A DNA stretch of 64,000 nucleotides, from sequence record MK268344.1; one strand, written 5' to 3'. The notes below the pieces were generated by a model. It saw only the letters and a program-made list of their open reading frames with translations. It did no database searches and was not told the origin of the DNA. Numbering within the stretch: the first letter of the stretch is position 1; every line of letters begins with the position of its first letter. Made by a program: the position numbers and the translations under genes. Of this stretch, positions 42-21,617 are shown in pieces.

Positions 42-1787
42 ATGAGTTGGAGAAGACAGATGACAACTGCGAGGTCGAAAGTATCTACCTCCAGTATAGA
101 ACAAAATAAAGCCAGTACTGCTAAAAGTACTGGTTCTAAATCTAACTATGCTTCGTACTTACCAGTTGTTTATACTGGTTTGTCAAACCGCACAGATAGA
201 TATCGTCAATATGAACAAATGGATCAAGACCCTGAAATAAGAACATCACTAGATATTATTGCAGACTTTTGTACTCAAAGTACTGAAGATTTTGGTCTAC
301 CATTTAAAATTAGATATAAAGATAAAATAGGTGATTCAGAAGTAACAACTTTAGAAGATCGTTTGGAATCGTGGGCTGAACAAAACGATTTTAAAACCAG
401 AATTTATGAAATTGTTCGTGGTCTACTAAAATACGGAGATCAGTTCTTTGTACGTGACCCAGAAACAATGGAATGGATTTGGGTAAACCCTGCAAACGTT
501 GAAGGTGTTTTTGTTAACGAAGAAACAGGTAAAAATCCAGTAGCTTATTTTATCCGGGATATTTCTTTTAATATGCGTGATAAAGTAATGTCAAACTTGC
601 AAATTGGTTTTGATAAAATGGCATATCCGGGATCATTACCTAATGCATTGAGTGGTTCTGCTAGTCAATTCGGTGGAATGGGTGGTGGTTATGCTAATGC
701 TGGTAATGCACAAAGTGCTGATCCGTTTAGTATGGCTGCTGGTCGTAAAGATGTTCTTCCTGTAGCGGCAGAACACGTAGTTCACCTAACACTAAATACA
801 GGACAAGATCCAGTGTGGCCTTTTGGTACTAGTATTCTTGAATATGTCTTTAAAGTTTATAAACAAAAAGAACTTCTAGAAGATAGTATCATCATCTATC
901 GTGTACAACGTGCTCCAGAACGCCGTGTATTTAAAATTGATGTTGGTGAAATGCAAACTCACCAAGCAATGGCATATGTTGAAAGATTTAAAAATGAAAT
1001 CCACCAGCGTCGTATACCTTCTAATAAAGGTGGTAGTACTTCATTGATGGATGCAGCTTATAACCCATTAAGTATTTTAGAAGACTATTTCTTCCCTCAA
1101 TCTTCGGAAGGTCGTGGTAGTTCAGTCGAAACTCTACCGGGTGGTGATAACTTGGGTCAAATTGATGACTTGCGTTATTTTAACAATAAATTGATTCGTG
1201 GTTTACAAATTCCAGCTTCATATCTACCACAGGGGCCAGATGATGGCGGGGTGGCTTTATTTGGAGATGGTGCAACCCAAGCAATGACCAGTGAATTGCG
1301 TTTTAACAACCAATGTATGCGTTATCAGCGTTTAATCGCCAAAGTTTTCGATATGGAATTTAAACGTTATATGGTTAAGAATGGTTATAGTATTAGTGCT
1401 TCATCTTTTGAAGTAATCTTTAACCCACCAATTAACTTCGCTTCATATCGTAAAGCAGAATTGGATGCAAAACTAATTAGTACTTACATGTCGCTAGACG
1501 GACTTCCATATATTGCTAAACAAACAATTCTCAAGAAAATGGGCTTTGAACAAAGTGATATTGTTGAGAACGAACAAAACTGGCTCATGGAAAATCCTGA
1601 TGCATTATCATCAGCACAGAGTGGTGAACAGGCAGGATTGAAATCGGTCGGAATCGATGCTCCTAATGATCCGGGAATGGATTTAGGTATGGATGAAGAA
1701 GGTAATATGGAAAGTGCTGATAAAGAATTCCAAGATATGGTTCAAAACGATGATTTTAACCCTAATAATTTAGGCAATTCTTTCTAA
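42..1787 (+). CDS. gp20: Portal protein (T4 gp20-like)
   Basis: 581 aa; motifs EDSIIIYRVQRAPERRVFKIDVG, EDYFFPQ..GRGSSVETLPGG, DLRYFNNKL; first gene of the head module. Confidence 0.95.
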   Translation: MSWRRQMTTARSKVSTSSIEQNKASTAKSTGSKSNYASYLPVVYTGLSNRTDRYRQYEQMDQDPEIRTSLDIIADFCTQSTEDFGLPFKIRYKDKIGDSEVTTLEDRLESWAEQNDFKTRIYEIVRGLLKYGDQFFVRDPETMEWIWVNPANVEGVFVNEETGKNPVAYFIRDISFNMRDKVMSNLQIGFDKMAYPGSLPNALSGSASQFGGMGGGYANAGNAQSADPFSMAAGRKDVLPVAAEHVVHLTLNTGQDPVWPFGTSILEYVFKVYKQKELLEDSIIIYRVQRAPERRVFKIDVGEMQTHQAMAYVERFKNEIHQRRIPSNKGGSTSLMDAAYNPLSILEDYFFPQSSEGRGSSVETLPGGDNLGQIDDLRYFNNKLIRGLQIPASYLPQGPDDGGVALFGDGATQAMTSELRFNNQCMRYQRLIAKVFDMEFKRYMVKNGYSISASSFEVIFNPPINFASYRKAELDAKLISTYMSLDGLPYIAKQTILKKMGFEQSDIVENEQNWLMENPDALSSAQSGEQAGLKSVGIDAPNDPGMDLGMDEEGNMESADKEFQDMVQNDDFNPNNLGNSF

Positions 1788-3717: not shown

Positions 3718-3725
3718 TATAAATA
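3718..3725 (+). promoter_or_regulatory. T4-type late promoter (scaffold)
   Basis: TATAAATA. Confidence 0.8.
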
Positions 3726-3772
3726 TTTGTACATCAAAAGTACGAATGTTAAGTACTTTACAGGAGATTATA

Positions 3773-4891: not shown

Positions 4892-4919
4892 ACATTTTTA
4901 ATAAGCTATTTTTTTCAGG

Positions 4920-4927
4920 CATAAATA
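4920..4927 (+). promoter_or_regulatory. T4-type late promoter (capsid)
   Basis: CATAAATA. Confidence 0.75.
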
Positions 4928-4972
4928 ATAACATACTGAAAAACGAAAAAACATCTTTTAAGGAGATATATA

Positions 4973-6148
4973 ATGTCACAACTATTAACTGAATCCAAAT
5001 GGGCAGCAGTAAAAGAAAAACTAACTGAAGGTCTAAAAGATAACCGTAAAACCGTTATGGAAGCTGTTCTAGAAAACCACCGTAAAGTAATGCTACGTGA
5101 AAGTGCTTCTCAAGGTGCAACTTCTGCTGGTAACATCGCAACACTAAACAAAGTAATTCTACCAATTATGCGTCGTGTTATGCCTACCGTTATCGCTAAC
5201 GAAATTATCGGTGTTCAACCTATGACTGGCCCTGTTGGTCAAATCCACACCCTACGTGTTCAATATGCTGACAACGCACCGGGCGTTATCGCTGGTGAAG
5301 AAGCACTATCCCCATACAAAATCGCTAAGTCCTATACTGGTGATGTTAATGGCGATAACGAAAATCCACGTGCTGCTCCTACTAGCCAACTAGAAGGTAC
5401 TATGGGTCGTCGCGTCAACATCCGTATCCTACGTGAAACCGTTGAAGCGAAATCTCGTCGTCTATCTGCTCGCTGGACTGTTGAATCTGCACAAGATGCT
5501 CAATCTCAACACGGTATCGACGTAGAAGCTGAACTAATGGCTGCTATCGCTCAAGAAGTTACCACTGAAATCGACCAAGAGCTACTACACAAACTACGTG
5601 CTCTACCGGGTGCCGCTGCTGTAACTTATGACCAATCTAAAGTTACTGGTGTTGCTACCTTTGTTGGTGACGAACACGCTGCTCTAGCTACTCTAATTAA
5701 CCGTCAAGCAAACGAAGTTGCTCGTCGTACTAAGCGTGGTGCTGCGAATTGGGCTGTTGTTTCTCCAACTGCACTAACTATTCTACAATCTGCTACCACT
5801 TCTAGCTTCGCTCGTACCACTGAAGGTACATTCGATGCTCCAACTAACGTTAAGTTTGTTGGTGTACTTAACAGTACTATGAAGATCTACGTTGATACCT
5901 ATGCTGATGATAGTACCGATGTATTGATTGGTTATAAAGGTAATGCAGAAACTGATGCTGGTGTATTCTATTGCCCGTACATCCCACTAATGGCATCTGG
6001 TACTGTAATGGATCCAAATACCGGGGAACTCGTAACGACATTTCTTACAAGATATGGCTACGTTCAGCTTACTGACAGTACTTCATCTCTCGGTAACGCT
6101 GCTGACTACTTCAGCAAAATTGCAATCCGCAACGTAACCTTCATGTAA
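4973..6148 (+). CDS. gp23: Major capsid protein (T4 gp23-like)
   Basis: IIGVQPMTGPVGQIHTLR, VEAKSRRLSARWT, AQEVTTEIDQE, FYCPYIPL, TRYG motifs; strong codon bias; late box at 4920. Confidence 0.97.
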   Translation: MSQLLTESKWAAVKEKLTEGLKDNRKTVMEAVLENHRKVMLRESASQGATSAGNIATLNKVILPIMRRVMPTVIANEIIGVQPMTGPVGQIHTLRVQYADNAPGVIAGEEALSPYKIAKSYTGDVNGDNENPRAAPTSQLEGTMGRRVNIRILRETVEAKSRRLSARWTVESAQDAQSQHGIDVEAELMAAIAQEVTTEIDQELLHKLRALPGAAAVTYDQSKVTGVATFVGDEHAALATLINRQANEVARRTKRGAANWAVVSPTALTILQSATTSSFARTTEGTFDAPTNVKFVGVLNSTMKIYVDTYADDSTDVLIGYKGNAETDAGVFYCPYIPLMASGTVMDPNTGELVTTFLTRYGYVQLTDSTSSLGNAADYFSKIAIRNVTFM

Positions 6149-6194
6149 TTAAAGTAGAAGTAATTTGATTCAAAAATTAATATAAAAACATTAA

Positions 6195-6226
6195 AAAAGG
6201 GACTCTTGACGAGTCCCTTTTCTTTT
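6195..6226 (+). terminator. Intrinsic terminator after the capsid gene
   Basis: AAAAGGGACTC-ttgac-GAGTCCCTTTT plus T-tract. Confidence 0.85.
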
Positions 6227-6234
6227 GCTATAAT
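6206..6234 (+). promoter_or_regulatory. Canonical sigma70 promoter of the endonuclease
   Basis: TTGACG-17-TATAAT with TG extension. Confidence 0.8.
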
Positions 6235-6248
6235 TCTTTATATTTTTT

Positions 6249-7178
6249 ATGGAGAGAATAATCTTGAATAAGAATGCACAACATTTTATCAATAGGGTTA
6301 ATGAAAAGTACGGAAAAGGTGTATACACCTTTGATAAACTTGATTATATCAACGCACACACAAAAGTTAAACTCTTTTGTGTAAGTGGACAGCATTACTT
6401 TACTATTGCTCCTATGCATATGGTATCTAAAAGCTCAAAGGGATGCAATAAGTGTCAAAAAAACACTGCATACACAACCGAAGAGTTTGTCGAGAAAATT
6501 TCTAAACTATACCCAACTCTTACCTTTGAGAAAACTGTGTATAAAACACAACGTAGCGGTAATGTTATTGTTACTTGTCATGCCGATCCAACTGATGTTC
6601 ATGATTGGGAAGTTGCGGCACATACTTTAATAAAAGGTAAAACTCAATGTGGTATTTGTTCTGGGAAAAGTGGTCGCACACCTGAACAATTTGTTAAAGA
6701 AGCCAGAAAAGTACATGGGGATAAGTATAATTATCCACACCCATATAAAAATAGTATGAAAAATATTGATATTGAATGTCCAATTGATGGTCATGGAATC
6801 TTTTCACAAAGCCCCAAAGCACACCTCGCTGGTCGTGGATGCCCCAAATGTGGAAAATATGGATATCAACCCTCACAACCCGGATATTTTTATGTTCAAA
6901 AGTTAGAATCTGATGATAAAGTACTGTACAAGTACGGAATTACCGGTGATATGGATCGTAGGATTACCGAACAGTCAAGAAATTCAGTTTTCAACCACAC
7001 AATTTTAGTAGAAAGGTACTTTGAAGATGGCAAAAAACCTTTAGTACTGGAAAAGTTCTTAAAAACTTACATCGAAAGCGGTGTTGCTACTCCAGATGAG
7101 CTACAATCTGGTTTTACTGAGACATTTGATGCCAAATACTTAGAAGTAGTTTTAGAAATTGTAAATAATTTCAAATAG
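6249..7178 (+). CDS. Free-standing putative homing endonuclease (three Cys/His zinc repeats plus C-terminal GIY-YIG-like domain)
   Basis: Three C..H...CxxC repeats (GCNKC, QCGIC, GCPKC) then YFYVQKL..LYKYGIT; own sigma70 promoter; TAG stop; sits right after the capsid gene. Confidence 0.75.
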   Translation: MERIILNKNAQHFINRVNEKYGKGVYTFDKLDYINAHTKVKLFCVSGQHYFTIAPMHMVSKSSKGCNKCQKNTAYTTEEFVEKISKLYPTLTFEKTVYKTQRSGNVIVTCHADPTDVHDWEVAAHTLIKGKTQCGICSGKSGRTPEQFVKEARKVHGDKYNYPHPYKNSMKNIDIECPIDGHGIFSQSPKAHLAGRGCPKCGKYGYQPSQPGYFYVQKLESDDKVLYKYGITGDMDRRITEQSRNSVFNHTILVERYFEDGKKPLVLEKFLKTYIESGVATPDELQSGFTETFDAKYLEVVLEIVNNFK

Positions 7179-7203
7179 CCCCTATAAAGAGGATAAAAAG
7201 AAT

Positions 7204-7608
7204 ATGAGAGTCAAGGATGACATGATAGTAACGGTATACAAGTTTCCGAATCAGGGATTCTACCCTAATATTGAGGGTGGATTTGACATGTATATAGATA
7301 TGTACACTGAAGTTGCTTTTTGTGAGGCATTACAGCAGTTGTACGTTAGTATAGAAGCGGTAAAGTACTTAAAATCTCAATACGTAGCTGACATTCTCAA
7401 AGTTGAGAGTGAAGAAATGCTTTACAAGGATTACGTACAGATGTATAAAGACAAGTTGAATGCGAAGTTCCCGGATGCACCCGTACTAGCTACAATAGAG
7501 TTAGATGCTGCTGGTAGGCCGAAGCCTGAGCTACCGGATCATTTAAAGCCCACGGATAATTTTGCAAAATTGCGAACAGCGGGGTTAAATTTCACAATTC
7601 AGAGATAA
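7204..7608 (+). CDS. Hypothetical protein
   Basis: 134-aa ORF with AGAGGA RBS. Confidence 0.7.
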   Translation: MRVKDDMIVTVYKFPNQGFYPNIEGGFDMYIDMYTEVAFCEALQQLYVSIEAVKYLKSQYVADILKVESEEMLYKDYVQMYKDKLNAKFPDAPVLATIELDAAGRPKPELPDHLKPTDNFAKLRTAGLNFTIQR

Positions 7609-7636
7609 TAAATACTTCCAATGATACGGAGGTAAT

Positions 7637-7945
7637 ATGTCTCAAATTTGTTATGTAATCACGAATCCTGCATGGCCTGAATGGGTAAAAATTGGATTCA
7701 CATCTAAATCGGAAATGAAAACACGTTTAAGTACTTATCAAACTGGAACACCTTTCCGGGATTTTGAAGTATATCATGAAGTACACTTTGATGATGCTAA
7801 GGAAGCGGAGAAAGAGGTACATAAGCGTTTAAAGCAAATGAACGCTACAAGGAGTCCCGGTACGGAATGGTTTAAGATGCCGAAGAAATTAGCTGCTAAC
7901 ATGATAGATGGAGTAGCAGACGACTTAGAGAATGGACTTCTATAA
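7637..7945 (+). CDS. T5orf172-type GIY-YIG domain protein
   Basis: CYVITNPAWPEWVKIGFT..RLSTYQTGTP..EAEKEVHKRL; RBS GGAGG. Confidence 0.8.
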   Translation: MSQICYVITNPAWPEWVKIGFTSKSEMKTRLSTYQTGTPFRDFEVYHEVHFDDAKEAEKEVHKRLKQMNATRSPGTEWFKMPKKLAANMIDGVADDLENGLL

Positions 7946-7984
7946 TAAATATCATTATAGTAATAAACATAAAAGGATTTATAA

Positions 7985-9580
7985 ATGAGTATTAGTTTTA
8001 ATCATCCTAAGAATACGGTGACTAGTACTGGATCATTGAATTTAATTGTAACTACAGGTAACCCTACTTCACCACAACCAATTAGATTTAATGCCACATC
8101 AGTAATTATGCCAGTACGTGCATTGCCATCAGGTGAAGCAGGTGCTATGGTGTTTGATACTGGTACTAAAACCATGAAATATCATAATGGCTTGAGTTGG
8201 GTAGAAATGCTCGGTCAAGATACGATTTTACAACCGATTTATACAGAAATCAACAATATTAATCAAAAGTTAGGTACTAAAGTAGATAGTGTAACCTATA
8301 ACTCAGGATCAGTTCCACAAGCATCTATTAGTGGTACACAATTAAGTATCACATTCCCTATTTCTAGTGGCGGTAGTACTGGCAGTAATGGTTTGTTTTC
8401 TTTATCTAAACAAAGCAGTATTCAAATGTACGCATTGTCTGATGGTATGTCTGCTGCTACTATACGTGAACAGATGAGTGGTAAGAGTGGTGGACAAAAT
8501 GGAAGAAACGGTTCACAAAGTTCACCATTCATTTCTAATGATGGTTGGTGTTTTGCTGATGGAATGTGGTGGACATGGGAAGGTGAAAGTGGTACAGTAA
8601 CTCAACGAGTACCAAATTTGAATCAACAAGCATACCTTAAACCAATGTCAGTTAGTGGTACGATACAAATTGGTTCTGTTATTGCATCATCTGCTGCAAT
8701 CGGAGGAACTTCGTTAACAATCGCACAGTTACCACCTCACAGCTTTAATGTTAGTGGACAAACTGATGCTGCTGGTGATCACGTTCATACTTTCCCACTA
8801 TCAAACCAAAGATCAGGTACTGGTTGGGCTGATGGTGCGACACCAAACAGATATGATGGTGATGGTAGAACTAATAATGGTGGGATTCACATACACACAT
8901 TCCAAGGAACTACTAATACTTTAGGTTCTGGTCAGCCTCATAGTCACACCATTAGTAACTTGGATGTAAACCACTTTAATGTAGCTATAATTTATAATAT
9001 TGCAACTCCTAGTTTTGCATTGAATGAATCTGCTGCTAATGGAAAATATGTATTAAAAACAGGTGATACCATGACAGGTTCATTAACTATTGCAACTGCT
9101 GCAACCATAAAAGGTAACGATTCGAATCTTACAATGTCATGGCGTAATAGTTCTAATGCTGAACGTGCTATGATTTATCATAGTTCGACAAACAATACAC
9201 TTCGTTTCCGTTCCAATGGCGGTACTGAAATGACATTAACACAGAGTGGTGTATTATCTATTAATAGTTTAACATCTAATACGTTAAACGTATCTGCAAA
9301 TAACGCTGTTGTTGCGGGTAAAAATATTGCACGATCTATTAATGGTGTTGGTGCTGATGCTAATGGTAATATTTCTTTACCATCAGGAAATAATATTACA
9401 GATATGAAATTGGGTAAAAGATTCACTGATGGTGTAGCTGAGAATATAGTTAGAAATGGTCATGTAATGACTGGATGGGCAAATGGTAACAAGAAAGAAT
9501 TACGTGGTGCCTCGTATTGGGTGGCCCCACTATATTACTATAGCAATGGACAGTGGAACCTTATTTCAAATGACCCATAA
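7985..9580 (+). CDS. Tail fibre-like structural protein
   Basis: G/S/T-rich; LTIAQLPPHSF, HxH repeats (HVH, HIH, HSH), YVLKTGDTMTG; followed by a fibre chaperone; late box at 7944. Confidence 0.75.
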   Translation: MSISFNHPKNTVTSTGSLNLIVTTGNPTSPQPIRFNATSVIMPVRALPSGEAGAMVFDTGTKTMKYHNGLSWVEMLGQDTILQPIYTEINNINQKLGTKVDSVTYNSGSVPQASISGTQLSITFPISSGGSTGSNGLFSLSKQSSIQMYALSDGMSAATIREQMSGKSGGQNGRNGSQSSPFISNDGWCFADGMWWTWEGESGTVTQRVPNLNQQAYLKPMSVSGTIQIGSVIASSAAIGGTSLTIAQLPPHSFNVSGQTDAAGDHVHTFPLSNQRSGTGWADGATPNRYDGDGRTNNGGIHIHTFQGTTNTLGSGQPHSHTISNLDVNHFNVAIIYNIATPSFALNESAANGKYVLKTGDTMTGSLTIATAATIKGNDSNLTMSWRNSSNAERAMIYHSSTNNTLRFRSNGGTEMTLTQSGVLSINSLTSNTLNVSANNAVVAGKNIARSINGVGADANGNISLPSGNNITDMKLGKRFTDGVAENIVRNGHVMTGWANGNKKELRGASYWVAPLYYYSNGQWNLISNDP

Positions 9581-9589
9581 GGATAAAAT

Positions 9590-10126
9590 ATGAAAATATA
9601 TAAAGGATGGGAAGAATACAAACCTATCAAAAATGAAAAAAATGCTAGTAGAATTGAATCTGGTTCAGTATTTTTACAGGATGAAAATGGTGTAGATTGG
9701 TACGATTTAAGTGATGAGCTTCTTTTACAACAAGATAATTACTATATTTTAGTAAATTCAAGTAGTAATATGGTTTTATGTTATTCCAAAGGATTTGAAC
9801 CTTGGTATTTTGCACCCATAGGTATGCTTTTTTGTATAACAGATAAAATACCAGATGACTTTGAAGAAAACTATCGGGATTATCGTTTAGATAAAAATAA
9901 ATTCGTTCCTGATAATTCATTAAAAATTCAAGGTCTTAAAGATTACATTGATGATGAAATTGTTTGGTCTTCTTCGCAAATAAGTGCATTAATGGATATC
10001 GAAGAATTTGGTACACCGTCTGAAGAAGAAAAAGCACGTTTGCTTGCATTACGTAAGTACCGCTTTACTCTAACTCGTGTAGTACCGGAAGATAACCCAG
10101 ATATTGACCTTCCAGATCGTCCTTAA
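9590..10126 (+). CDS. Tail fibre assembly chaperone (Tfa-like)
   Basis: FLQDENGVDWY and C-terminal LLALRKYRFTLTRV..LPDRP. Confidence 0.8.
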   Translation: MKIYKGWEEYKPIKNEKNASRIESGSVFLQDENGVDWYDLSDELLLQQDNYYILVNSSSNMVLCYSKGFEPWYFAPIGMLFCITDKIPDDFEENYRDYRLDKNKFVPDNSLKIQGLKDYIDDEIVWSSSQISALMDIEEFGTPSEEEKARLLALRKYRFTLTRVVPEDNPDIDLPDRP

Positions 10127-10131
10127 AAATC

Positions 10132-10162
10132 TTGGGACAAAAAAAGAATCATGTGATATAAT
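10132..10162 (+). promoter_or_regulatory. GGGA-class promoter (dsbA/pol)
   Basis: TTGGGACA-17-TATAAT with TGTGA before the -10. Confidence 0.85.
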
Positions 10163-10218
10163 AGAAGCACGATGAGCAATGACGCTCACGTGCTTTTTTT
10201 ATAAATGGAGAAAACAAC

Positions 10219-10515
10219 ATGGCTAAGAAAACTGAAAACAAAGTAGAAATCAAAGATCTAAACGACGAACAACGTAAGCGTCTTGGTGCTGGCCTAAACA
10301 ATGCTGTAGTCCAACTAACCTATATGGAAGATACTAAAGCTGCTTATTCTGATTTCATCGATTCACTAGCTGATGAACTTGGTCTAGATGCATCAACCAT
10401 CAAACAAGCGGCAACCCGTATGCATAAAGGTGATTTCTTCGATAAAGTCCGTAAACAAGATGAAATCGAAACTATCCTTCAAATTACTGGTAACCTACCA
10501 GAAGATGACGAGTAA
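10219..10515 (+). CDS. T4 DsbA-like dsDNA-binding protein
   Basis: 98 aa; ADELGLDASTIKQAATRMHKGDF resembles T4 DsbA as recalled. Confidence 0.6.
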   Translation: MAKKTENKVEIKDLNDEQRKRLGAGLNNAVVQLTYMEDTKAAYSDFIDSLADELGLDASTIKQAATRMHKGDFFDKVRKQDEIETILQITGNLPEDDE

Positions 10516-10525
10516 TATGTCATAC

Positions 10526-10549
10526 AGCCTCCTAGTATGGAGGCTTTTT
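10526..10549 (+). terminator. Intrinsic terminator after dsbA-like gene
   Basis: AGCCTCC-tagtat-GGAGGCT-TTTT. Confidence 0.8.
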
Positions 10550-10580
10550 AATTGAAGTATGTTTATTATAAGGAAATAAG

Positions 10581-13500
10581 ATGTATATAGATGGATTTAT
10601 GGAACGTAAACGAACTGGTGATATTCTACATGTAGCAGAACGTATTAACGGTCGTCGTGTACTTCGTCAACTAGACCCTGTATATGAATACTATGTTGAA
10701 TCACCAACGGGAACATTTAAAACCATTCACGGTACAATGGCTGAGAAATTAACCTTTGCTAACCAACGTGATATGCGTAGTTCCCTTGAACTACATCAAG
10801 GTCGTCGAACCTACGAATCTGACTGTAACGTTACCTTTAAAACTCTTGCACAAGAGTACATGGGTAAAGGTTCACCAGATTTGAATATGGTATTCTTCGA
10901 TATTGAAACCGACTTCCATAAGAAGCTCGGATATGCACCACCAAGTAACCCATTTAACCGTGTTACTGCAATTTCCCTTTATCAGAACTGGACAGGTAAA
11001 GATTATGTACTAACCTTACCACCTGATGATATGGAATTAGTTGAAGCACAGGATATCGTTAACCGATTGAATGAAGAAACTAATGATCCCAACAGTGTAG
11101 TACTTCTTTACACCGAAGAAACTGAAATGTTCAATGACTTCTTTGATTTGATTGATGATGCTGATGTACTTTCTGGATGGAACAGTGAGTTCTTCGATAT
11201 TCCATACATGGTTAACCGTACTGCAAAAATCTTCAATGCTGCAACTACGGCTCGTTGGTGTTTGTGGAATAAAAAACCTGTATCTCGTGAAGCAGATATG
11301 TTTGGTAAAACAATTGTCACTTATGACTTAATCGGTCGTGTTCACCTAGATTATCTAGCGTTGTATAAGAAACACGCAGGTCAAGTTGAGCAATCGTACA
11401 AACTAGACTTCATCGCAGAAAAAGTTACAAAAGAAAATAAAGTAGCGTATGAAGGTTCTCTTGACAAATTGTACCGAGAGGATTATATTACATTCCTACG
11501 TTATTCCAAACAGGATAGCATTCTTCTTAAAAAGATTGATGAGAAGTTAGACTACATCAACCTACACAACCGACTAGCACACAAAGAATGTGTACTAATC
11601 AGTACTACAATGGGTTCTGTAGCACTAATTGACACAGCAATCATAAACCTTGCACATTCAAGAGGTGAAGTGGTATTTGATAAGAAGCCACAAGAAGATG
11701 ATGTTACTGAACAAGATGATCGTTATGATTACCTCATTGAAGATGAGGATGATGGTTCAGATAATGAACCAGTATCGGCAAAAGCTGCTGGTGCATGGGT
11801 ACAAGATCCAGTACTAGGACTTGTAGACTACTTAGGATGTACTGACTTTAACTCACTATATCCAACAGTACTACGTACATTAGGTATGAGTACTGAATGT
11901 ATTCTTGGACAAATTCGCCAAGATTATACAGATGCACATCTTGCAAAACGTGTAGAAGAACAACGTATGCGTTCTAAGTCTAAGAAGTTCGAACCGAACT
12001 GGACAGAAGCATGGCACGGTCTATTTGCAAGTGTTGAGTTCACGATGGTTCGTGAGCGTTCAGAGCAAACACTAATTGTTGATTTGGAAGATGGCACCAG
12101 TTTCAACGTGACAGGTGCAGAGCTTCATGATATCATTTATGCTGAAGACAGTACTATTGTACTTTCTGCTAATGGTACGTTGTTCGATAAAACTAAATCT
12201 GGGGTCATTCCAGAGATTCTAACTCAATGGTATTCTGAGCGTAAGTCTCAACAGAAGATGGTAATCGACTTCAAACACATTTATACTGATGGTTGGGAAA
12301 TGCCAGAGGACGCTATCGATAAGATAGAGGCTGCTATGGCTCGCTACAAGCGTTCTGAGACGATGTATAGAACGAACCTACACGAAGACGATCCAGTTTA
12401 TTTGATTCGTCAGGCGTTGGTACAGAGCGATTATGAGCAGGTTGGAAAGCTAATCACAGAGAATGGTCTTCTACTAGAAGATGGTCGTATCAAATGTACT
12501 AAAGAAGAGAAAAATTATTGTAAAACGCAATCTGCGTTCTGGAAGCAGAACCAACAGATTCGTAAGATTCTTCTCAACTCACTTTATGGTGCATTGCTCA
12601 ACAAAGGTTCTAGATTCTTTGATAAACGTTTAGGTCAATCTGTAACCTTAACTGGTCGCAGTATGACTAAACATATGGCATCCCGTATCAACGAAATTTG
12701 TACTGGTGAATACAATCACCAAGGCGGCGTTGTAATTTACGGCGACACCGACTCCGTTTACTTTAGTGTAGCTCACTACATGAAAGAACAGGGTCTACCA
12801 TTTGATTTAACAAAAGAAGAAGTTGTTGATCTATATGTGAAAATTGGTGATGAAGTTGGTGCATCTTTCCCTTCCTTTATGGATGAATATTTCAATACTG
12901 GTATCGAGAAAGGTAAAATCGTAGGTGCAGATTTGGAAATGGTAGGCTCTCGTGGTCTATTCTTGAAGAAAAAGCGTTATGCGATCCTCAAATATTGGGA
13001 AGATGGATTCCGTAAAGACGAAGATGGATCACCGGGTGAAATCAAGGCTATGGGATTAGAAATCAAACGTTCTGATACACCAAAGTATATCCAAGATTTC
13101 CTACAAGAAACTCTTATCGCATTGCTAGTTGGCGAAGGAGAAGAAGAACTACGTAATAGAGTTCGTGCATTCAAAACTATTTTCCGTGATAAGCCTATTC
13201 AGCAGAAAGGGCAACCACGTACAGTTAAAAACTATTCGAATCTAGAAGAAGAATATAAGAAAACTGGTAAATTATCAGTATCGCATGTTCTAGCTGCGAT
13301 TCAATGGAACAAACTACGTGATATATATGAAGATCAATCAGTTCCAGAAGCAACTGACGGAACTAAAGTTATCGTTTGTAAGTTAAAGCCAAACCCAATG
13401 GGAATAAAAGCTGTCGGCTACCCAATTGATTGTGCTGAATACTTACCAGAATGGTTCTTGGAGCTACCTTTTGATGAAGATGAGATGGAAAAAGCCGTTT

Positions 13501-13601
13501 TGACTAAGAAACTAGGTAATATTTTCGGTATTCTAAACATGGATATCGCAATCAACGAGAAGAGTACACTAGTAATGGATAGTGGATTCTTCGAATGGTA
13601 A
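10581..13601 (+). CDS. gp43: Family B DNA polymerase (gp43-like)
   Basis: Exonuclease motifs DIET, WNSEFFDIPY; polymerase motifs DFNSLYP, KILLNSLYG, YGDTDS, KKRYA. Confidence 0.97.
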   Translation: MYIDGFMERKRTGDILHVAERINGRRVLRQLDPVYEYYVESPTGTFKTIHGTMAEKLTFANQRDMRSSLELHQGRRTYESDCNVTFKTLAQEYMGKGSPDLNMVFFDIETDFHKKLGYAPPSNPFNRVTAISLYQNWTGKDYVLTLPPDDMELVEAQDIVNRLNEETNDPNSVVLLYTEETEMFNDFFDLIDDADVLSGWNSEFFDIPYMVNRTAKIFNAATTARWCLWNKKPVSREADMFGKTIVTYDLIGRVHLDYLALYKKHAGQVEQSYKLDFIAEKVTKENKVAYEGSLDKLYREDYITFLRYSKQDSILLKKIDEKLDYINLHNRLAHKECVLISTTMGSVALIDTAIINLAHSRGEVVFDKKPQEDDVTEQDDRYDYLIEDEDDGSDNEPVSAKAAGAWVQDPVLGLVDYLGCTDFNSLYPTVLRTLGMSTECILGQIRQDYTDAHLAKRVEEQRMRSKSKKFEPNWTEAWHGLFASVEFTMVRERSEQTLIVDLEDGTSFNVTGAELHDIIYAEDSTIVLSANGTLFDKTKSGVIPEILTQWYSERKSQQKMVIDFKHIYTDGWEMPEDAIDKIEAAMARYKRSETMYRTNLHEDDPVYLIRQALVQSDYEQVGKLITENGLLLEDGRIKCTKEEKNYCKTQSAFWKQNQQIRKILLNSLYGALLNKGSRFFDKRLGQSVTLTGRSMTKHMASRINEICTGEYNHQGGVVIYGDTDSVYFSVAHYMKEQGLPFDLTKEEVVDLYVKIGDEVGASFPSFMDEYFNTGIEKGKIVGADLEMVGSRGLFLKKKRYAILKYWEDGFRKDEDGSPGEIKAMGLEIKRSDTPKYIQDFLQETLIALLVGEGEEELRNRVRAFKTIFRDKPIQQKGQPRTVKNYSNLEEEYKKTGKLSVSHVLAAIQWNKLRDIYEDQSVPEATDGTKVIVCKLKPNPMGIKAVGYPIDCAEYLPEWFLELPFDEDEMEKAVLTKKLGNIFGILNMDIAINEKSTLVMDSGFFEW

Positions 13602-13612
13602 TAGGAACAATA

Positions 13613-14185
13613 ATGTCAGGAATTTTTCAACGCATTGGGGAGGCAATTGCCTCCCAAGGTAAAATCACACTAGTTGCAGCACTAAATGATGAAGAAGCAA
13701 ACATTCTCATGGGTGCTGGGTTCAAAAAAGCTGGTACAATGGATCTAAATGGTTCTTTAGTTGACCTTTACGAAGTAAAAGTACAACAAATAATCAACAC
13801 TACTCAACCATATCAAATTGCACGTGATATTTTTGATAAGCCTCGGAAATATGAACAACAATGGCCTGAAAACTATCGCATGTACTCTATCGGCACTGGT
13901 ACTGGTCAAGCTGCTCATTTAAATTTCAAAGGAAACACCACTTCTTTGATGGATGCTGCATATGATCCACTAAGTATTTTAGAAGATTATTTCTTCCCAA
14001 GAAAAGAGGAAGAAACTCATAGAGAATTCAAAATTGAAGTTGATGATATGGATGAAGAATCCAAAAATGATTTCATTCCAAAAGTTAAAGATGAATTCCA
14101 TAAATCAGGTCGCACATATTGCGATGATAGCTGGACTTCTTATAATGTAAATTACAGTGGCAACACTGACCACCGTAACTGGTAA
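13613..14185 (+). CDS. Hypothetical protein carrying two permuted portal-clip segments
   Basis: ATG 13613 after AGGA; aa 110-129 are 19/20 identical to portal 333-352; aa 137-163 align without gaps to portal 295-321. Confidence 0.8.
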   Translation: MSGIFQRIGEAIASQGKITLVAALNDEEANILMGAGFKKAGTMDLNGSLVDLYEVKVQQIINTTQPYQIARDIFDKPRKYEQQWPENYRMYSIGTGTGQAAHLNFKGNTTSLMDAAYDPLSILEDYFFPRKEEETHREFKIEVDDMDEESKNDFIPKVKDEFHKSGRTYCDDSWTSYNVNYSGNTDHRNW

Positions 14186-14201
14186 TAAAAATAAAAAAAA
14201 G

Positions 14202-14232
14202 TTGGGACGTACCGAGATTTATGTGATATAAT
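14202..14232 (+). promoter_or_regulatory. GGGA-class promoter (clamp operon)
   Basis: TTGGGACG-17-TATAAT. Confidence 0.85.
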
Positions 14233-14291
14233 AGGTACGTCACAACGTTAAAAATAAGAAACGTTAACAAAATGGAATTGGAGATTTAAAA

Positions 14292-15023
14292 ATGGATTTA
14301 CGCAACGTTCTACGCGACCTAGTTAGCACTACTACTGGTATGGATTTCTCTTGTATCGCAGTTTCACGAGAAGACCGTGGCGAAGGTAATCGTGTTTACA
14401 TGGAAGCATATACAGATGATAAGACTCTAATCATGAGAGCCGAAACTAAAGAAGACGTACCAGAAGTTGAAGGTCGTTTTGGTCTAGGTAACCTCGGAAT
14501 GCTTCAAGGTCTTATGAATCTAAAAACCTACAACTCCGAATCTGCTAAGATCGCAGTCAATGCAGCAAACGGTGTTGTTAAAAGTCTAGCATTTACATCT
14601 GATGATGCAAGTACTAACTTTATTGTTCAATCGGAAAAATTTATTCCTAACCAACCACGCTTTACTCCACAACCATATGATGTACAGGTTACACCTAGTG
14701 CTGCAAAGGTTGGCGAACTAAAGTCTTTCTCTAGTGTATTCAAATCTTTTTCTGCTTTAGTTACTCCTTATACTGAAGGTGATACACTATATTTCCACGT
14801 TGGTGAGAAGAATAAATCAAACCACTCAGGTGCATTAGCTTTCACCAAAACTGATGGTGAACTAAAACTAGGATATGGTTATGCGATTGATCGTCTTCTT
14901 CAAGCACTAAATCGTGTGTCTAATGCTGAAGAAATTACCCTTGGTATTACAAAAACTGGTATGCTAAACGTTACTGTTGACACTGGCATTACTGTGTTTA
15001 AATTCTTCATCCAAGGTAACTAA
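14292..15023 (+). CDS. Sliding clamp (gp45-like)
   Basis: 243 aa, beta-rich, FGLGNLGMLQGL segment; size and context typical of the clamp in this phage group. Confidence 0.65.
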   Translation: MDLRNVLRDLVSTTTGMDFSCIAVSREDRGEGNRVYMEAYTDDKTLIMRAETKEDVPEVEGRFGLGNLGMLQGLMNLKTYNSESAKIAVNAANGVVKSLAFTSDDASTNFIVQSEKFIPNQPRFTPQPYDVQVTPSAAKVGELKSFSSVFKSFSALVTPYTEGDTLYFHVGEKNKSNHSGALAFTKTDGELKLGYGYAIDRLLQALNRVSNAEEITLGITKTGMLNVTVDTGITVFKFFIQGN

Positions 15024-15030
15024 TAAATCA

Positions 15031-15054
15031 AGGGGAACTATGTTCCCCTATTTT
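15031..15054 (+). terminator. Intrinsic terminator after clamp
   Basis: AGGGGAAC-tat-GTTCCCCT-ATTTT. Confidence 0.7.
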
Positions 15055-15071
15055 CGATGGAGATGTAACAA

Positions 15072-15695
15072 ATGAGTACTCCACGCTTTATTGCTGATAC
15101 CCACTTGGGTCACCGCAATATCTATAAGTACAGAAAAGTGTTCGATAGTACTAAACATAATGACTTGTACTTTATTCGTATTCTGCAAGAAACTTGCAAA
15201 AAAAGAGATACTATGTTTTTCTTGGGTGATATTTGTTTTGACAAACAATATCTAGAAATTATAAAAGAACTTCCGGGACAAAAAATTCTTATTCCGGGAA
15301 ATCACTGTACTGAATATATTCCAATGAAAGAACTAGTAGATGTTTATGATGAAGTACATGCACTACTAAAATATAAAGAATTCTGGCTTTCTCATGCACC
15401 AATTGCTGATGTTGAATTACGTGGTAAAAGAAATATTCATGGACATGTTCATGCACAGTCTGTTCCTGATATTAAATATCTAAACACTTCTGTTGATAGT
15501 GAATTTATGAGATTTCTACCTAGAACACTTCATGAAGTTCGTCAAGCATTTGAAACAATGGAACAACTCGGTTCACATTATGGTGGATTAGAAGACCGCG
15601 ATGATGCATTAGAAGTTATCATGTCAAATCCTATTTCAAAAGCAGCTTACGAGTGGTCTAAGAAAGAAGCAGAAAAGATTATGGTTTTTCAATAA
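15072..15695 (+). CDS. Calcineurin-like metallophosphoesterase
   Basis: DTHLGH, LGD, GNH, SHAP, HGHVH motifs. Confidence 0.9.
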   Translation: MSTPRFIADTHLGHRNIYKYRKVFDSTKHNDLYFIRILQETCKKRDTMFFLGDICFDKQYLEIIKELPGQKILIPGNHCTEYIPMKELVDVYDEVHALLKYKEFWLSHAPIADVELRGKRNIHGHVHAQSVPDIKYLNTSVDSEFMRFLPRTLHEVRQAFETMEQLGSHYGGLEDRDDALEVIMSNPISKAAYEWSKKEAEKIMVFQ

Positions 15696-15705
15696 GGATA
15701 TTAAA

Positions 15706-15909
15706 ATGCCATTATATACATACAAATGTCAAAATGAAGAATGTGATCATTCTGAAGATAAAATTGTCAAAATTTCAAATCGTGACGATGAGCGGAAATG
15801 TCCATCATGTGAAGATGGATTACTAAAGCGTGAAGAATTCACTGCTGGTGATAAAGGTGCATCATTCCGTTTCAAAGGAAACTGGTTCAATACTACAGGG
15901 AGATACTAA
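15706..15909 (+). CDS. FmdB-family zinc-ribbon protein
   Basis: MPLYTYKC..C...CPSC..FRFKGNWF. Confidence 0.85.
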   Translation: MPLYTYKCQNEECDHSEDKIVKISNRDDERKCPSCEDGLLKREEFTAGDKGASFRFKGNWFNTTGRY

Positions 15910-16199
15910 TGAGTACTTTAAAAATGATTAATGACTATGTTCTAGTGGAACTAGTTGAAAACCACACCACCAGTACTGGTGGTATTATTCTAACCAACGT
16001 TGAGCCACCTTGCATTGGTCGTGTTGTTTCAGTTGGCCCCGGACGTATCCTAAATAACGGTGAAAGGGCTGAACACAACATTGAAGTTGGCGAAGAAATT
16101 GTATTTGGTAAATCTTCCTTGAATCAGCCTCTAGAACACGAAAAAGTAACATATTATGTTATGAAAATTGATGAGGTATTTGGTAAAAGAAATGGCTAA
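15909..16199 (+). CDS. groES: GroES-like co-chaperonin
   Basis: TSTGGIIL, GRVVSVGPGRILNNGER, VGEEIVF. Confidence 0.9.
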   Translation: MSTLKMINDYVLVELVENHTTSTGGIILTNVEPPCIGRVVSVGPGRILNNGERAEHNIEVGEEIVFGKSSLNQPLEHEKVTYYVMKIDEVFGKRNG

Positions 16200-16893
16200 G
16201 AAGTTACCATTCTGGATGATCCCCGCTCATTGGGGATTATCTGGTAAAGCAAAAGAAATTGCTAAGATTAACTACTTTTATGAAGGGTATGAAGCTGATG
16301 TACGATGTGCACCACTTGTGTACTTAACTGAGTATGAAGTTGATAAAGCAATTGTTGATATTGAAAAAAAATACAACAAACTTTCTGAATTAGAATATGA
16401 TTTGAAGATGCTCGACATTGAGTTGAAGCATAAACGTATTACTGAACATGAACGTGATGAACAAGCACTCGACAAGCGTTTCCAACATAATGCAATTCGC
16501 GAAAAGGAGTATGATGCTGCTAAAGTTGAATTAATGGAAGACGGTGATGAGAAGCGTTTAGCTGCAATTGAATACGCATTTAAATATCATGAGATTACTG
16601 AACGAGAGTACAGTAAAGAACTCTTTACCATGCGTAAAGAACCTTGGATGGATTTTGATGTAGAATTCAATCAAGAAACTAATAAGGTTGAATTCATATT
16701 TGATTACAATGAATACTTTTGGAAGAAATTAAAGGCCGAAGGTCATCCGGGTAATGATGAATATGAAATCATTGAAAACTTTATTAAAGATTGGGGAAGG
16801 AAGTTAGACGATGAAGAGTACACTGATGATGAAGATGTGAACTTAACACGTATGACTGATGAATTACCTGATAATATCAAATTTTACAAATAA
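16192..16893 (+). CDS. Hypothetical helical protein
   Basis: Open frame, probable ATG 16192 overlapping groES; ends at a bidirectional terminator. Confidence 0.7.
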   Translation: MAKKLPFWMIPAHWGLSGKAKEIAKINYFYEGYEADVRCAPLVYLTEYEVDKAIVDIEKKYNKLSELEYDLKMLDIELKHKRITEHERDEQALDKRFQHNAIREKEYDAAKVELMEDGDEKRLAAIEYAFKYHEITEREYSKELFTMRKEPWMDFDVEFNQETNKVEFIFDYNEYFWKKLKAEGHPGNDEYEIIENFIKDWGRKLDDEEYTDDEDVNLTRMTDELPDNIKFYK

Positions 16894-16926
16894 AAAAAAA
16901 AGGAGAACGAAAGTTCTCCTTTTTTA
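16892..16926. terminator. Bidirectional terminator
   Basis: A-tract AGGAGAAC-gaaa-GTTCTCCT T-tract between convergent genes. Confidence 0.9.
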
Positions 16927-16937
16927 TTAAGTTTTTA

Positions 16938-17591
16938 TTAACCAAGTAGTGCTGGGATAGATTTGTAAATCTTGATAGCAAAGTTACCAGCGGCAGCAGC
17001 AGCGGAACCTTTAAGAATTACTTCTTTACCAGTTTTATCCATTAGTGGAACACCAGCTAGATCATCTAGAAGTAGACGACCTTCGTCAATTGCAGTAGAT
17101 GGAACACCTTGGAAAGAAATTGAATCACGGTCAAACACATCTGCACGTTCAACTAGGAAAGTGATAACATCAGCAGAAGCGATGTTAGCAGCAGCATCAA
17201 CACCATCAACTACGTTTTTGAGACCATTAGCAGCAACGCCTTTAGCGATATCAGAAGTAGCGATGATAACTGCACGTTGCTGAACAACATCAACGATGCG
17301 TTTAACGTTAGTTTGAGCAGCATATGCTTCAGTGTAGTCTTCTTCAACGGTTGCTTCAACGAATTCAGAGCCGTCAACACGGACAACACCTTTGTCATTT
17401 AGGAACTCAACGATTTCGTCTTTGTTCTGGGTGTTTAGAAAATGTTGTAGACCAACATAAGAACATACTGCACCAGTTACTACTAGAGCAATGTCACCAG
17501 TAGTATCGATTGCAATAGTTGCTAGTGCGTTTTTACCTTGGAAATAACCAAGTACGCTATCTTGGGAGAAACCATTAATACGTTCTAACAT
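16938..17591 (-). CDS. Putative virion structural protein (paralog of 17605-18168)
   Basis: ATG 17591 after AGGAG; highly biased codons; late operon on the minus strand. Confidence 0.65.
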   Translation of the reverse strand: MLERINGFSQDSVLGYFQGKNALATIAIDTTGDIALVVTGAVCSYVGLQHFLNTQNKDEIVEFLNDKGVVRVDGSEFVEATVEEDYTEAYAAQTNVKRIVDVVQQRAVIIATSDIAKGVAANGLKNVVDGVDAAANIASADVITFLVERADVFDRDSISFQGVPSTAIDEGRLLLDDLAGVPLMDKTGKEVILKGSAAAAAGNFAIKIYKSIPALLG

Positions 17592-17604
17592 ATCATTCTC
17601 CTTA

Positions 17605-18168
17605 TTATAGTAGTACTGGAAGTGCAGCAAATACTTTAATAGCTACTGGTAGTGCATCAGCAGGAGTACCATCTTTCTTACGGAAAGCACCAGCTTGACC
17701 TAGAGCAGCAGATAGTTCAGCACATGGCTCAACAGGAACTGGATAGTTAGAACCCGGACGAACTGCTTGTGCAGTTAGAACATCTTGACGTTCGATCATG
17801 AAAGTAATACCGAAAGAATCAGCAGTTAGGGTTCCAGATTTACCGAAAGCAATTACGTTACCTTCAATTTTCTCGAAGTCAGCAGCGGTAGGATCAACAC
17901 TTCCTTTAGCTAGCATAGAAGTAGCAACTTCAACAGAACGTTGTGCTAGAATTTGTGCAATCATAAATTGGTTGTACTCAGCAGCAGATAGTGCAGTTTG
18001 TGCAGCATTATCACCAATTTCAGTACCATCAGGTAGTACCGCAGTTTCGCCAATTTCTACATCAGCAGGTAGAGAAACAACAACAGTAACGAAACCGTTA
18101 TTACCACCCCAATATTCGCGACTGTTAGCTGACATGCCATAGTTGCGATCAAAAGAATTAAGACTCAT
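17605..18168 (-). CDS. Putative virion structural protein (paralog of 16938-17591)
   Basis: ATG 18168 after AAGGAG; late box GATAAATA on the minus strand at 18216-18223. Confidence 0.65.
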   Translation of the reverse strand: MSLNSFDRNYGMSANSREYWGGNNGFVTVVVSLPADVEIGETAVLPDGTEIGDNAAQTALSAAEYNQFMIAQILAQRSVEVATSMLAKGSVDPTAADFEKIEGNVIAFGKSGTLTADSFGITFMIERQDVLTAQAVRPGSNYPVPVEPCAELSAALGQAGAFRKKDGTPADALPVAIKVFAALPVLL

Positions 18169-18215
18169 AAAAATCTCCTTGTCTAATTTGTTGCAGGATT
18201 GTCCCTGCTTAAAGT

Positions 18216-18223
18216 TATTTATC
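18216..18223 (-). promoter_or_regulatory. T4-type late promoter (minus-strand structural pair)
   Basis: GATAAATA on the minus strand. Confidence 0.7.
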
Positions 18224-18292
18224 AATTCTGAACATTCATCTTTCGATAAATGGATAAAATTGATTTGTTTCTGTGATATTATTTATCAAATC

Positions 18293-18322
18293 TTGGGACA
18301 AACCAGAAAAATGTGCTATAAT
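18293..18322 (+). promoter_or_regulatory. GGGA-class promoter (rnh)
   Basis: TTGGGACA-16-TATAAT. Confidence 0.8.
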
Positions 18323-18335
18323 AGAGGGGAAATAA

Positions 18336-19342
<1,007 letters not shown>

Positions 19343-19343
<1 letters not shown>

Positions 19344-19852
19344 TGGCAGTACTAAACAAATTAACAGATTATTCTTTTATCTTAGAAACTGATGCAGGTG
19401 AACAACTAGGTATTATCGTTGATTACAGTGCAGGAACAACCGAACGTACTGGACTTGAGCTTTTTAATAATGATGGGGTATATCCTTTTAATTCTTTAAC
19501 TGAACTTGAAGAAATGATTGGTGAACCATTCAAAGTTAAAGAGAAAGAACAGACTGACATTACTACCAGTACTAAAGAAATTGATGGTTATCCGGTAAAC
19601 GACACTGATACTATTATTGGTGTAACGGTTAACGAAGAAACAGGCTATCCAGTGTTTAGAAAAAGTGAACGTTCTAAGAAACTATTCTATCCGGGCTGGT
19701 GGGTTGTACAAACTGCTGAAGGTGATCATCTAGCACGTTTAACTCTAAGTGTTGACATTTACAATGAGCGTAAAGATACTGGTAAGATTTTCGGGCCATT
19801 TAAAACGTATATGGAATGTAACTATCAACTAAAATCGCTATCACAAAAATAA
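19343..19852 (+). CDS. Hypothetical protein
   Basis: 169-aa ORF translationally coupled to rnh. Confidence 0.7.
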
Positions 19853-19874
19853 GGATGCCCCGGCGTCCTTTTTT
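19851..19874 (+). terminator. Intrinsic terminator before terL
   Basis: AAGGATGC-cccg-GCGTCCTT-TTTT; second IR AATAGTTGC/GCAACTATT follows. Confidence 0.75.
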
Positions 19875-19931
19875 AGTTTCATATGTAATAGTTGCAAATG
19901 CAACTATTTTTAAGTACAAAGAATAATCTTT

Positions 19932-19939
19932 TATAAATA
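19932..19939 (+). promoter_or_regulatory. T4-type late promoter (terL)
   Basis: TATAAATA. Confidence 0.8.

Positions 19940-19973: not shown

Positions 19974-21617
<1,644 letters not shown>

Follow-up and report, generated by a model that had tools for sequence, protein, structure and literature searches.

A rearranged copy of the portal clip encoded behind the DNA polymerase gene of Salmonella phage Munch

Why should a phage carry, directly behind the gene for its DNA polymerase, a second and rearranged version of part of its own portal protein? The question is raised by CPT_Munch_291, an open reading frame (ORF) annotated as a hypothetical protein in Salmonella phage Munch (MK268344), a jumbo myovirus of 350 kb that belongs to the Rak2/121Q/GAP32 group. 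It lies in a stretch of 64,000 nucleotides (nt) of that record, here called the window, in which a position equals the record position minus 186000. The original prediction, made from the letters of the window, took the ORF for a permuted copy of the phage's portal clip and a candidate portal mimic. Judging from the sequence comparisons set out below, it is a real, selected and expressed-looking gene that bears a rearranged, free copy of the clip. The predicted coordinates of both ORF and portal gene proved correct, and the features on which the argument turns are the following (aa, amino acids).

13613..14185, + strand: the ORF, 190 aa plus stop codon.
13613..13774, + strand: N-terminal alpha/beta domain (aa 1-54), family-defining, with the order helix-strand-helix-strand-strand.
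13775..13927, + strand: linker (aa 55-105), variable, rich in P, W, Y and G, predicted to be flexible.
13928..13999, + strand: segment B (aa 106-129), copy of the clip hairpin and strand beta2 (portal aa 329-352; T4 gp20 about 314-337).
14021..14101, + strand: segment A (aa 137-163), copy of clip strand beta1, tip and helix alpha6 (portal aa 295-321).
14102..14182, + strand: C-terminal tail (..DDSWTSYNVNYSGNTDHRNW), clade-specific, with 69% mean pairwise identity in the Munch clade.
42..1787, + strand: portal gene, source of the copied segments (Pfam Portal_T4, E 1.9e-115).
912-1160, + strand: portal clip, about aa 291-373, from the alignment to T4 gp20 (3JA7) with clip limits taken from PMC4493910.
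924-1004, + strand: portal segment A.
1026-1097, + strand: portal segment B.

The similarity is most conspicuous in segment B, where ORF aa 110-129 (TSLMDAAYDPLSILEDYFFP) and portal aa 333-352 are identical at 19 of 20 positions, and BLASTP of the ORF against the portal aligns 28 residues with 22 identities (ORF aa 106-133, portal aa 329-356; E 4e-12). The corresponding 60-nt stretches differ at eight positions in seven codons, six of which carry single synonymous changes and one of which (GAT/AAC, D/N) carries two, essentially as had been claimed. Segment A aligns with portal aa 295-321 without gaps at 9 of 27 identical positions, as predicted, and is weak when taken alone (pairwise E 0.003). 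A hidden Markov model (HMM) of the portal segment recovers the same region, with E 8e-4 for Munch and values as low as 1e-11 among relatives; one of these, P0006, gives two high-scoring segment pairs against the Munch portal, in swapped order (E 1e-14 and 2e-9), and hhalign of the family profile against the portal profile likewise yields two matches in swapped order (E 5.3e-14 and 5.1e-7). The predicted inversion, B then A in the ORF against A then B in the portal, is therefore borne out by BLASTP and hhalign, and the homology is real. In a tblastn search of the window with the ORF and five relatives only the portal was found, and a mosaic of several virion-protein mimics was accordingly rejected; no second copy of the Munch C-terminal tail was detected in any phage record. 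The Munch ORF has no Pfam match at E<=0.1, but PF07230 (Portal_T4) is matched by 15 of 41 family members on their own, with P0006 exceeding the gathering threshold.

What the two segments represent can be judged from the portal of T4, onto which (gp20, 3JA7) the Munch portal was mapped by alignment, at about 30% identity in the clip region. The clip is the sole part of the T4 portal in which main-chain hydrogen bonds tie one subunit to the next, by way of a three-stranded sheet that extends across two subunits. It comprises gp20 residues 279-358, with three strands and helix alpha6, contains the inter-subunit beta-sheet and serves as docking site for gp17 and gp13 (PMC4493910); within it, a helix at 295-309 and a hairpin at 311-325 have been delineated, the latter touching gp13 (PMC12929629). 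Cryo-electron microscopy places the C-terminal arm of gp13 between adjacent alpha6 helices, along a clip beta-strand (PMC12929587), and the large terminase subunit (TerL) docks on the clip in both T4 and HK97 (PMC4493910, PMC10359639). Segment B, whose first half is the counterpart of the T4 hairpin 311-325, corresponds on this map to the exposed hairpin and beta2 (joined in some relatives by the inner clip loop and beta3), and segment A to beta1, the tip and alpha6; because the two segments fall on the elements of the T4 clip in this way, the ORF is best described as carrying an essentially complete clip domain, rearranged, rather than two peptides. In the relatives, PF07230 is matched at profile positions of about 202-280 only, out of a whole profile of about 430 that takes in wing, stem, clip and crown. 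The methionine at the clip tip is retained in Munch (T4 M292, portal M304, ORF M146).

Is the copy recent, or has it been kept? Mean pairwise identity, computed by region over 41 family members, differs markedly along the protein.

B core, AAY[DN]PLSILEDY: 79%, the highest in the protein.
N-terminal domain: 55%.
Strand beta1: 37%.
Linker: 35%.
Helix alpha6: 25%.

In each of ten phages, the codons common to the B segment of the ORF and that of the cognate portal are as many as codon usage alone predicts (p 0.05-0.78). Since codon sharing is at chance level and the B core is conserved, the copies are old and the peptide is under purifying selection; the earlier argument for selection on the peptide and against a recent DNA copy thus stands, and recent gene conversion with the portal gene is ruled out by the same ten comparisons. 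Over 21 residues the portal segment itself shows no difference (100% identity) among at least 62 isolate genomes from several genera; a test of co-variation between ORF and portal consequently has no power, since the portal offers no change that the ORF could follow. B is present in a second copy in only 12 isolate records, namely those of the Munch group, Mimasvirus, Hallingskeid and Kaldavass.

That the ORF is an artefact, be it a misassembly that joined portal sequence to the locus or a non-coding frame, we consider barely conceivable. Five phages, each sequenced independently, have the ORF with at least 99.5% identity, which excludes a misassembly, and dozens of metagenomic contigs show the same synteny; its DNA is only 87% (segment B) and 59% (segment A) identical to the portal gene, it is the amino-acid sequence that is conserved, and the gene has a ribosome-binding site.

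Word-based and profile searches retrieved about 45 relatives of 105-210 aa, and about 70 further relatives were found overall in isolates and metagenomes. They align with the Munch protein from MSGIFQRIGEA on and constitute a family that has not been described previously and is limited to Rak2-like jumbo phages. In several of them (P0003, P0006, P0007, P0009 and P0012) the C-terminal half reads YRGSTTSLVDAAYNPLSILEDYFFPEASDRGNSVET-RTFKIDVGDLPKGKELEYVEKFKKEIHKTG, that is, portal aa 330-364 fused directly to portal aa 295-323. When all members were scored with HMMs made from the portal segments, the clip was found in the following forms.

B then A: 23 members, Munch included.
A then B: 3 members (P0043, P0044 and P0046).
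B only: about 22 members (GAP32, XbC2, Kaldavass and CBB; also Hallingskeid, in which A is seen by eye but falls below threshold).
B duplicated: 1 member (P0037, in which two B motifs stand in tandem).
No clip piece: about 25 members (Serratia BF, Yersinia fHe-Yen9-04 and 121Q among them).

The three members with the clip in portal order are metagenomic and have it right after the N-terminal domain; the gene of one, P0046, sits between the polymerase gene and that of a 243-aa protein on a 76-kb contig, and its product forms a gap-free alignment of 66 residues with its own portal (45% identity, E 2e-18). Short proteins of 121Q and BF17 (98-100 aa) align with these native-order members and retain only a degenerate beta1/alpha6, and in the Mimasvirus-type members, which have B only, the tip/alpha6 part is missing. 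Because the clip states interleave on a poorly resolved tree of the N-terminal domain, with at least about 20 changes and with close relatives differing from each other, the clip module is evolutionarily labile. Tandem duplication followed by loss of the ends is the textbook route to a circular permutation, and the simplest history would start from an ancestral N-terminal domain with a native clip and follow this route, the intermediates being still present. A beta1-like strand right after the N-terminal domain (KVQQIINT in Munch, KEVVKIVEV in Mimasvirus), noticed by eye, would be compatible with 1.5 tandem copies; it is absent from the suboptimal matches of hhalign and has no statistical support.

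Two peculiarities of the family ends may be recorded here. The native-order proteins have an N-terminal extension of 24 residues (..ADYSAY.EYSKFMEN..) resembling a separate 49-aa gene, 611, ahead of the 121Q member (L007:3862-4011), which suggests a gene fusion or fission. Many C-termini in the family (GAP32, XbC2, Serratia BF, P0055, P0061 and Munch) end in ..[AV]RN[IVK] or ..RNW, possibly a second terminal motif.

The setting of the gene is as stable as its clip is changeable, as the order of polymerase gene, ORF and 243-aa gene is conserved in all nine phages checked. The neighbouring elements in Munch are these.

10581..13601, + strand: gene for family B DNA polymerase (annotation), upstream gene in the transcription unit of the ORF.
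13603..13606, + strand: AGGA, ribosome-binding site in the gap that separates polymerase stop and ORF start, annotated in MK268344 and visible in the sequence.
14292..15023, + strand: 243-aa gene, downstream of the ORF, its place kept in the same nine phages.

Terminator-like hairpins lie at 10526-10545, before the polymerase gene, and at 15031-15049, after the 243-aa gene, with no further hairpin of this kind on the + strand between them, and for this reason the three genes look like one transcription unit. The gap from polymerase stop to ORF start (ATG at 13613) is 11 nt, so that the ORF does stand directly behind the polymerase, as the original prediction had it. Nor is there a late-promoter box upstream of it, again as predicted: TATAAATA was not found anywhere from 3725 to 19932, and none precedes the polymerase operon. 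Boxes of this T4 type are seen at 19932-19939, 54 nt ahead of the TerL gene, and at 2129-2136 and 3718-3725, ahead of two head-region genes; the box is not enriched in the window, where 8 were found against 8.1 expected. The product of the 243-aa gene has a mean column identity of 86% across genera, and searches of Pfam, NCBIfam and PDB sequences with it gave no match. From its size and place one might take it for a sliding clamp, a label to which Pfam, NCBIfam, PDB sequences and a profile search lent no support.

Could the portal-like part be incidental to what the protein does? The N-terminal domain defines a narrow family, since its profile, searched against 1.84 billion representative proteins, gave 40 matches of which about 33 are genuine members of the small family. 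Seven of its positions (R7, I8, G9, S14, G16, F37 and G41) are invariant or nearly so, and AlphaFold2 folds it confidently, with block means of the predicted local distance difference test (pLDDT) of 60-80 in Munch and 77-86 in P0006. Thirteen of the 41 members match Pfam RNase_J_C (PF17770), the C-terminal dimerisation domain of RNase J, residues 11-66 of the members scanned falling on profile positions 7-60 with two helices and three strands predicted; none of the matches listed is above threshold, however (best 21.5-22.9 bits against 23.8; one at 13.1), the detailed matches come from close relatives in one clade, and the Munch protein itself has no such match. A single member resembles a YhbY-like RNA-binding domain at E 0.0095, far under the cut-off.

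One explanation therefore deserves mention in which the N-terminal domain does the job of the family, as a replisome-associated or an RNA-binding or dimerising unit, and the clip is a decaying remnant of a duplication or a generic hydrophobic peptide, for example a clamp-binding one. Many members do lack the clip and its decay is visible in 121Q and Serratia BF; the gene has the polymerase on one side and the conserved 243-aa gene on the other, the C-terminus of the polymerase (...LVMDSGFFEW) may be set beside the LEDYFF of the B core, and the sub-threshold RNase_J_C and YhbY-like matches point the same way. Against this, the B core is the most conserved stretch wherever it is present, although synonymous sites are saturated, and it keeps the conservation pattern of the portal over about 20 residues, far beyond the needs of a generic motif; moreover, the 243-aa neighbour has no detectable similarity to a sliding clamp. 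We hold this explanation to be improbable.

Structure prediction is less generous to the clip part than to the N-terminal domain. In two AlphaFold2 runs covering Munch and P0006, block-mean pLDDT was 42-57 for the clip strands and 67-75 for the alpha6 helix (predicted at aa 148-164 in Munch, with block means of about 73-75), and the means of 10-residue blocks in the linker were 42-54. The proposal that the permutation lets a monomer display a composite clip surface thus found no backing in these models, in which confidence for the clip part was low in both runs. Foldseek returned nothing from the PDB at E<=0.001 (best E 0.2) and, from BFVD, family members only, all of them uncharacterised proteins of Rak2-like phages, RaK2 included.

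A further clue to the meaning of the B core came from the large terminase subunit, the last residues of which were repeatedly returned by a permissive tblastn search of the ORF against the window.

21579..21608, + strand: extreme C-terminal tail of TerL, ending in TR plus stop codon, with a short motif related to the B core.

The motif is present within about the last 12 residues of TerL in all Rak2-like phages, the protein ending in ...SHYQPLGYIMSYNR in Hallingskeid and in ...GQLYQPLSILVSYNR in Mimasvirus. The Mimasvirus tail YQPLSILVSYNR is identical at 7 of 10 positions to the portal stretch YNPLSILEDY; when six-frame translations of the GAP32 locus were shuffled 200 times, 7/10 or more was reached twice. 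Among 110 ORFs of the window, a loose form of the motif occurs in the ORF, the portal and the TerL tail only; a strict form is expected 0.002 times, for a pattern that was defined after the data had been seen. The TerL match in Mimasvirus is about 2300 nt long as opposed to about 1630 nt, and GAP32_268/269 (L003:23200-25543; also L044, L046 and L048-L050) are adjacent ORFs both annotated as large terminase, perhaps because the TerL gene has been split or has acquired an insertion or duplication at its 5' end.

Comparable endings are found in T4 and its relatives (T4 loci L122:673-2505 and 5208-6782 and L123:1125-2054; relatives L124-L148). The terminase gp17 of T4 ends in HGMSMV, and in the T4 portal gp20 the homologous counterpart of NPLSIL is HNMSMT; the gp13 arm ends in DPPFGILVG, which resembles the strand motif. 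TerLs of T4 relatives end in G-[LMIV]-S-[FM]-V, and those of more distant T4-like phages in a stretch of acidic residues and then P[ML]P[IVF][FYI]. In one T4 relative (L147) the portal has NMALT and the tail GIASLV, a parallel change in one case. A strict co-variation of TerL tail and portal strand among the T4 relatives was considered and found to be weak, as the tails vary (GLSFV, GMSFV) and the portal strand stays NMSMT. Each of these similarities is short and moderately significant; together they place the B core of the ORF in the clip-cleft docking system, and they suggest for the TerL tail a docking in the portal clip like that of the adaptor arms.

The ORF shares with such clip-plugging tails (residues 301-309 of the T4 gp13 arm, and the TerL tails) a short hydrophobic strand of the P-h-[SG]-I-L type on a flexible tether: DPLSILEDY in the ORF, QPLSILVSY or QPLGYLMSY in TerL, PPFGILVG in gp13. 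Unlike theirs, the Munch motif lies within the protein, 64 residues short of the end (in CBB the distance to the C-terminus is 9 residues), it is flanked by more portal sequence, and at 19/20 identity it is the portal version, not the tail version.

The same observations speak to the idea that the free clip traps the terminase, binding the C-terminal tail or the nuclease domain of TerL and either keeping it off replicating DNA until there are proheads or recruiting it there, which we think unlikely. TerL docks on the clip in T4 and HK97, as noted above, its tail has a like-for-like version of the best-conserved strand of the ORF, compatible with homotypic pairing, its gene lies in the same replication-rich block, and the clip-tip methionine is kept. 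Yet the residues proposed to contact gp17 in T4, at the tip and the start of alpha6, belong to the least conserved part of the ORF (25%) and are missing in the Mimasvirus-type members. Furthermore, with TATAAATA 54 nt upstream of its start TerL may be a late protein like the portal, a two-helix cleft cannot form from a single clip, and the TerL tail motif exists whether or not the ORF has a clip.

We instead favour, with a probability of roughly 40%, the reading that the ORF encodes an accessory protein acting on the docking or zipper interface of the portal clip by strand mimicry. The protein would be made alongside the replication genes as a soluble stand-in for the clip and would pair, strand to strand, with the real interface at the packaging vertex. 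Its preferred target would be the portal protein, as unassembled subunits or at the clip cleft, and binding could cap or time the formation of portal rings and the docking of terminase and neck; the N-terminal domain may dimerise and so add avidity. The portal is favoured as the target because the best-retained part, the hairpin with beta2, belongs in T4 to the inter-subunit sheet and the surface contacted by the adaptor, and because the tip and alpha6, the proposed contacts of gp17, are least conserved and are absent from members with B only. An accessory rather than an essential role is proposed because the module has been lost or has decayed repeatedly.

Several facts sit uneasily with this reading. 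AlphaFold2 does not fold the clip part confidently, for which the need of a partner, a shallow alignment or true disorder may be responsible; contact with the portal is argued from the structure of T4, with which identity in the clip region is only about 30%; and the similarity to the TerL tail is short (5/10 in Munch), with weak co-variation among T4 relatives. On a tree of poor resolution, at least about 20 losses or decays of the module are counted, and so many members do without a clip that the conserved function may lie in the N-terminal domain and be unrelated to the portal. Early expression, finally, is deduced from operon position only.

A bolder extension, which we offer tentatively, is that in the Rak2 group the soluble clip surrogate serves as a checkpoint at the packaging vertex, and that portal beta2, TerL tail and adaptor arm make up a general docking code of T4-type phages; in a variant of it, the surrogate would blind host sensors of the portal. 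That last notion leads to the immune explanation, a decoy for portal-sensing immunity having been among the ideas of the original prediction. The clip copy would be a decoy or shield that occupies or confuses sensors of portal monomers (Avs4, Avs11) or of the ring (RAZR), or masks the clip of newly made portal. Portal-sensing defences are many, several families of them having been described (PMC12642450, PMC13581612, PMC13017515), and a small and probably early gene with a variable C-terminal half and frequent gain and loss has the pattern of an accessory counter-defence gene. The sensor papers, however, report sensing of the portal, and the clip as the part that is read has no support here; a faithful mimic might activate a sensor instead of blocking it; and the C-terminal halves of members without a clip resemble one another but no other phage protein in the loci compared, so that a general mimicry cassette is not apparent. 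On balance we regard a decoy as quite improbable.

How, then, does the ORF relate to systems already known? With the T4-type portal (gp20 279-358, PF07230, 3JA7) the family shares homology to all clip elements, beta3 in some relatives, but the ORF lacks wing, stem and crown and has 190 aa against 581; its elements are re-ordered in Munch and joined by a long linker to an unrelated N-terminal domain, and it is found in the polymerase operon instead of among the head genes, its relatives not being annotated as virion proteins. As in circularly permuted domains, the two halves are both significantly similar and swapped, and the family includes native-order relatives and one member with a duplicated half (P0037).

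In T4, gene 40 lies among replication and recombination genes, and we know of no portal-derived sequence in its product. The ORF has a functional analogy with gp40, and no more than that: no long hydrophobic stretch is visible in it, and no relation to gp40 was found in Pfam, PHROGs and NCBIfam, which gave only phrog_25089 and phrog_36847 (unknown function) and the portal phrog_213. The T4 protein is a small chaperone of portal assembly that acts before head assembly (PMC4493910, PMC7824862). On these comparisons the product of the ORF is not a portal, being clip only, nor a gp40 homologue, nor a terminal docking tail, and Pfam, PHROGs and NCBIfam offer no named family for it. A literature search found no published account of a stand-alone or permuted portal clip, and what the family seems to offer is a new architecture of a known domain, with a function that is possibly new.

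The family bears on how a five-fold terminase and a twelve-fold neck dock on the same clip and on how premature portal rings are prevented, and a free-standing natural clip module is a possible probe of, or competitor for, the docking interface. A single gene family displays the domain in native, duplicated, permuted and decaying states, and the motif shared by TerL tails, the T4 adaptor arm and the portal clip strand amounts to a concrete docking hypothesis. To our knowledge, no phage has been described that copies a piece of its own virion protein against portal-sensing immunity; were the counter-defence explanation true, this would be such a phage.

Two features adjoining the transcription unit remain to be recorded. 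Just upstream of the polymerase gene, a 98-aa gene (10219-10515) matches PHROG 639 (transcriptional regulator, E 5.7e-8) and is bracketed by terminator-like hairpins at 10173-10188 and 10526-10545. On the other side, 21 nt past the ORF stop, an 8-bp inverted repeat (GACGTACC ... GGTACGTC) was noticed by eye at 14206-14241, with a 20-nt loop that holds TGATATAAT; this resembles a -10 box and precedes the 243-aa gene.

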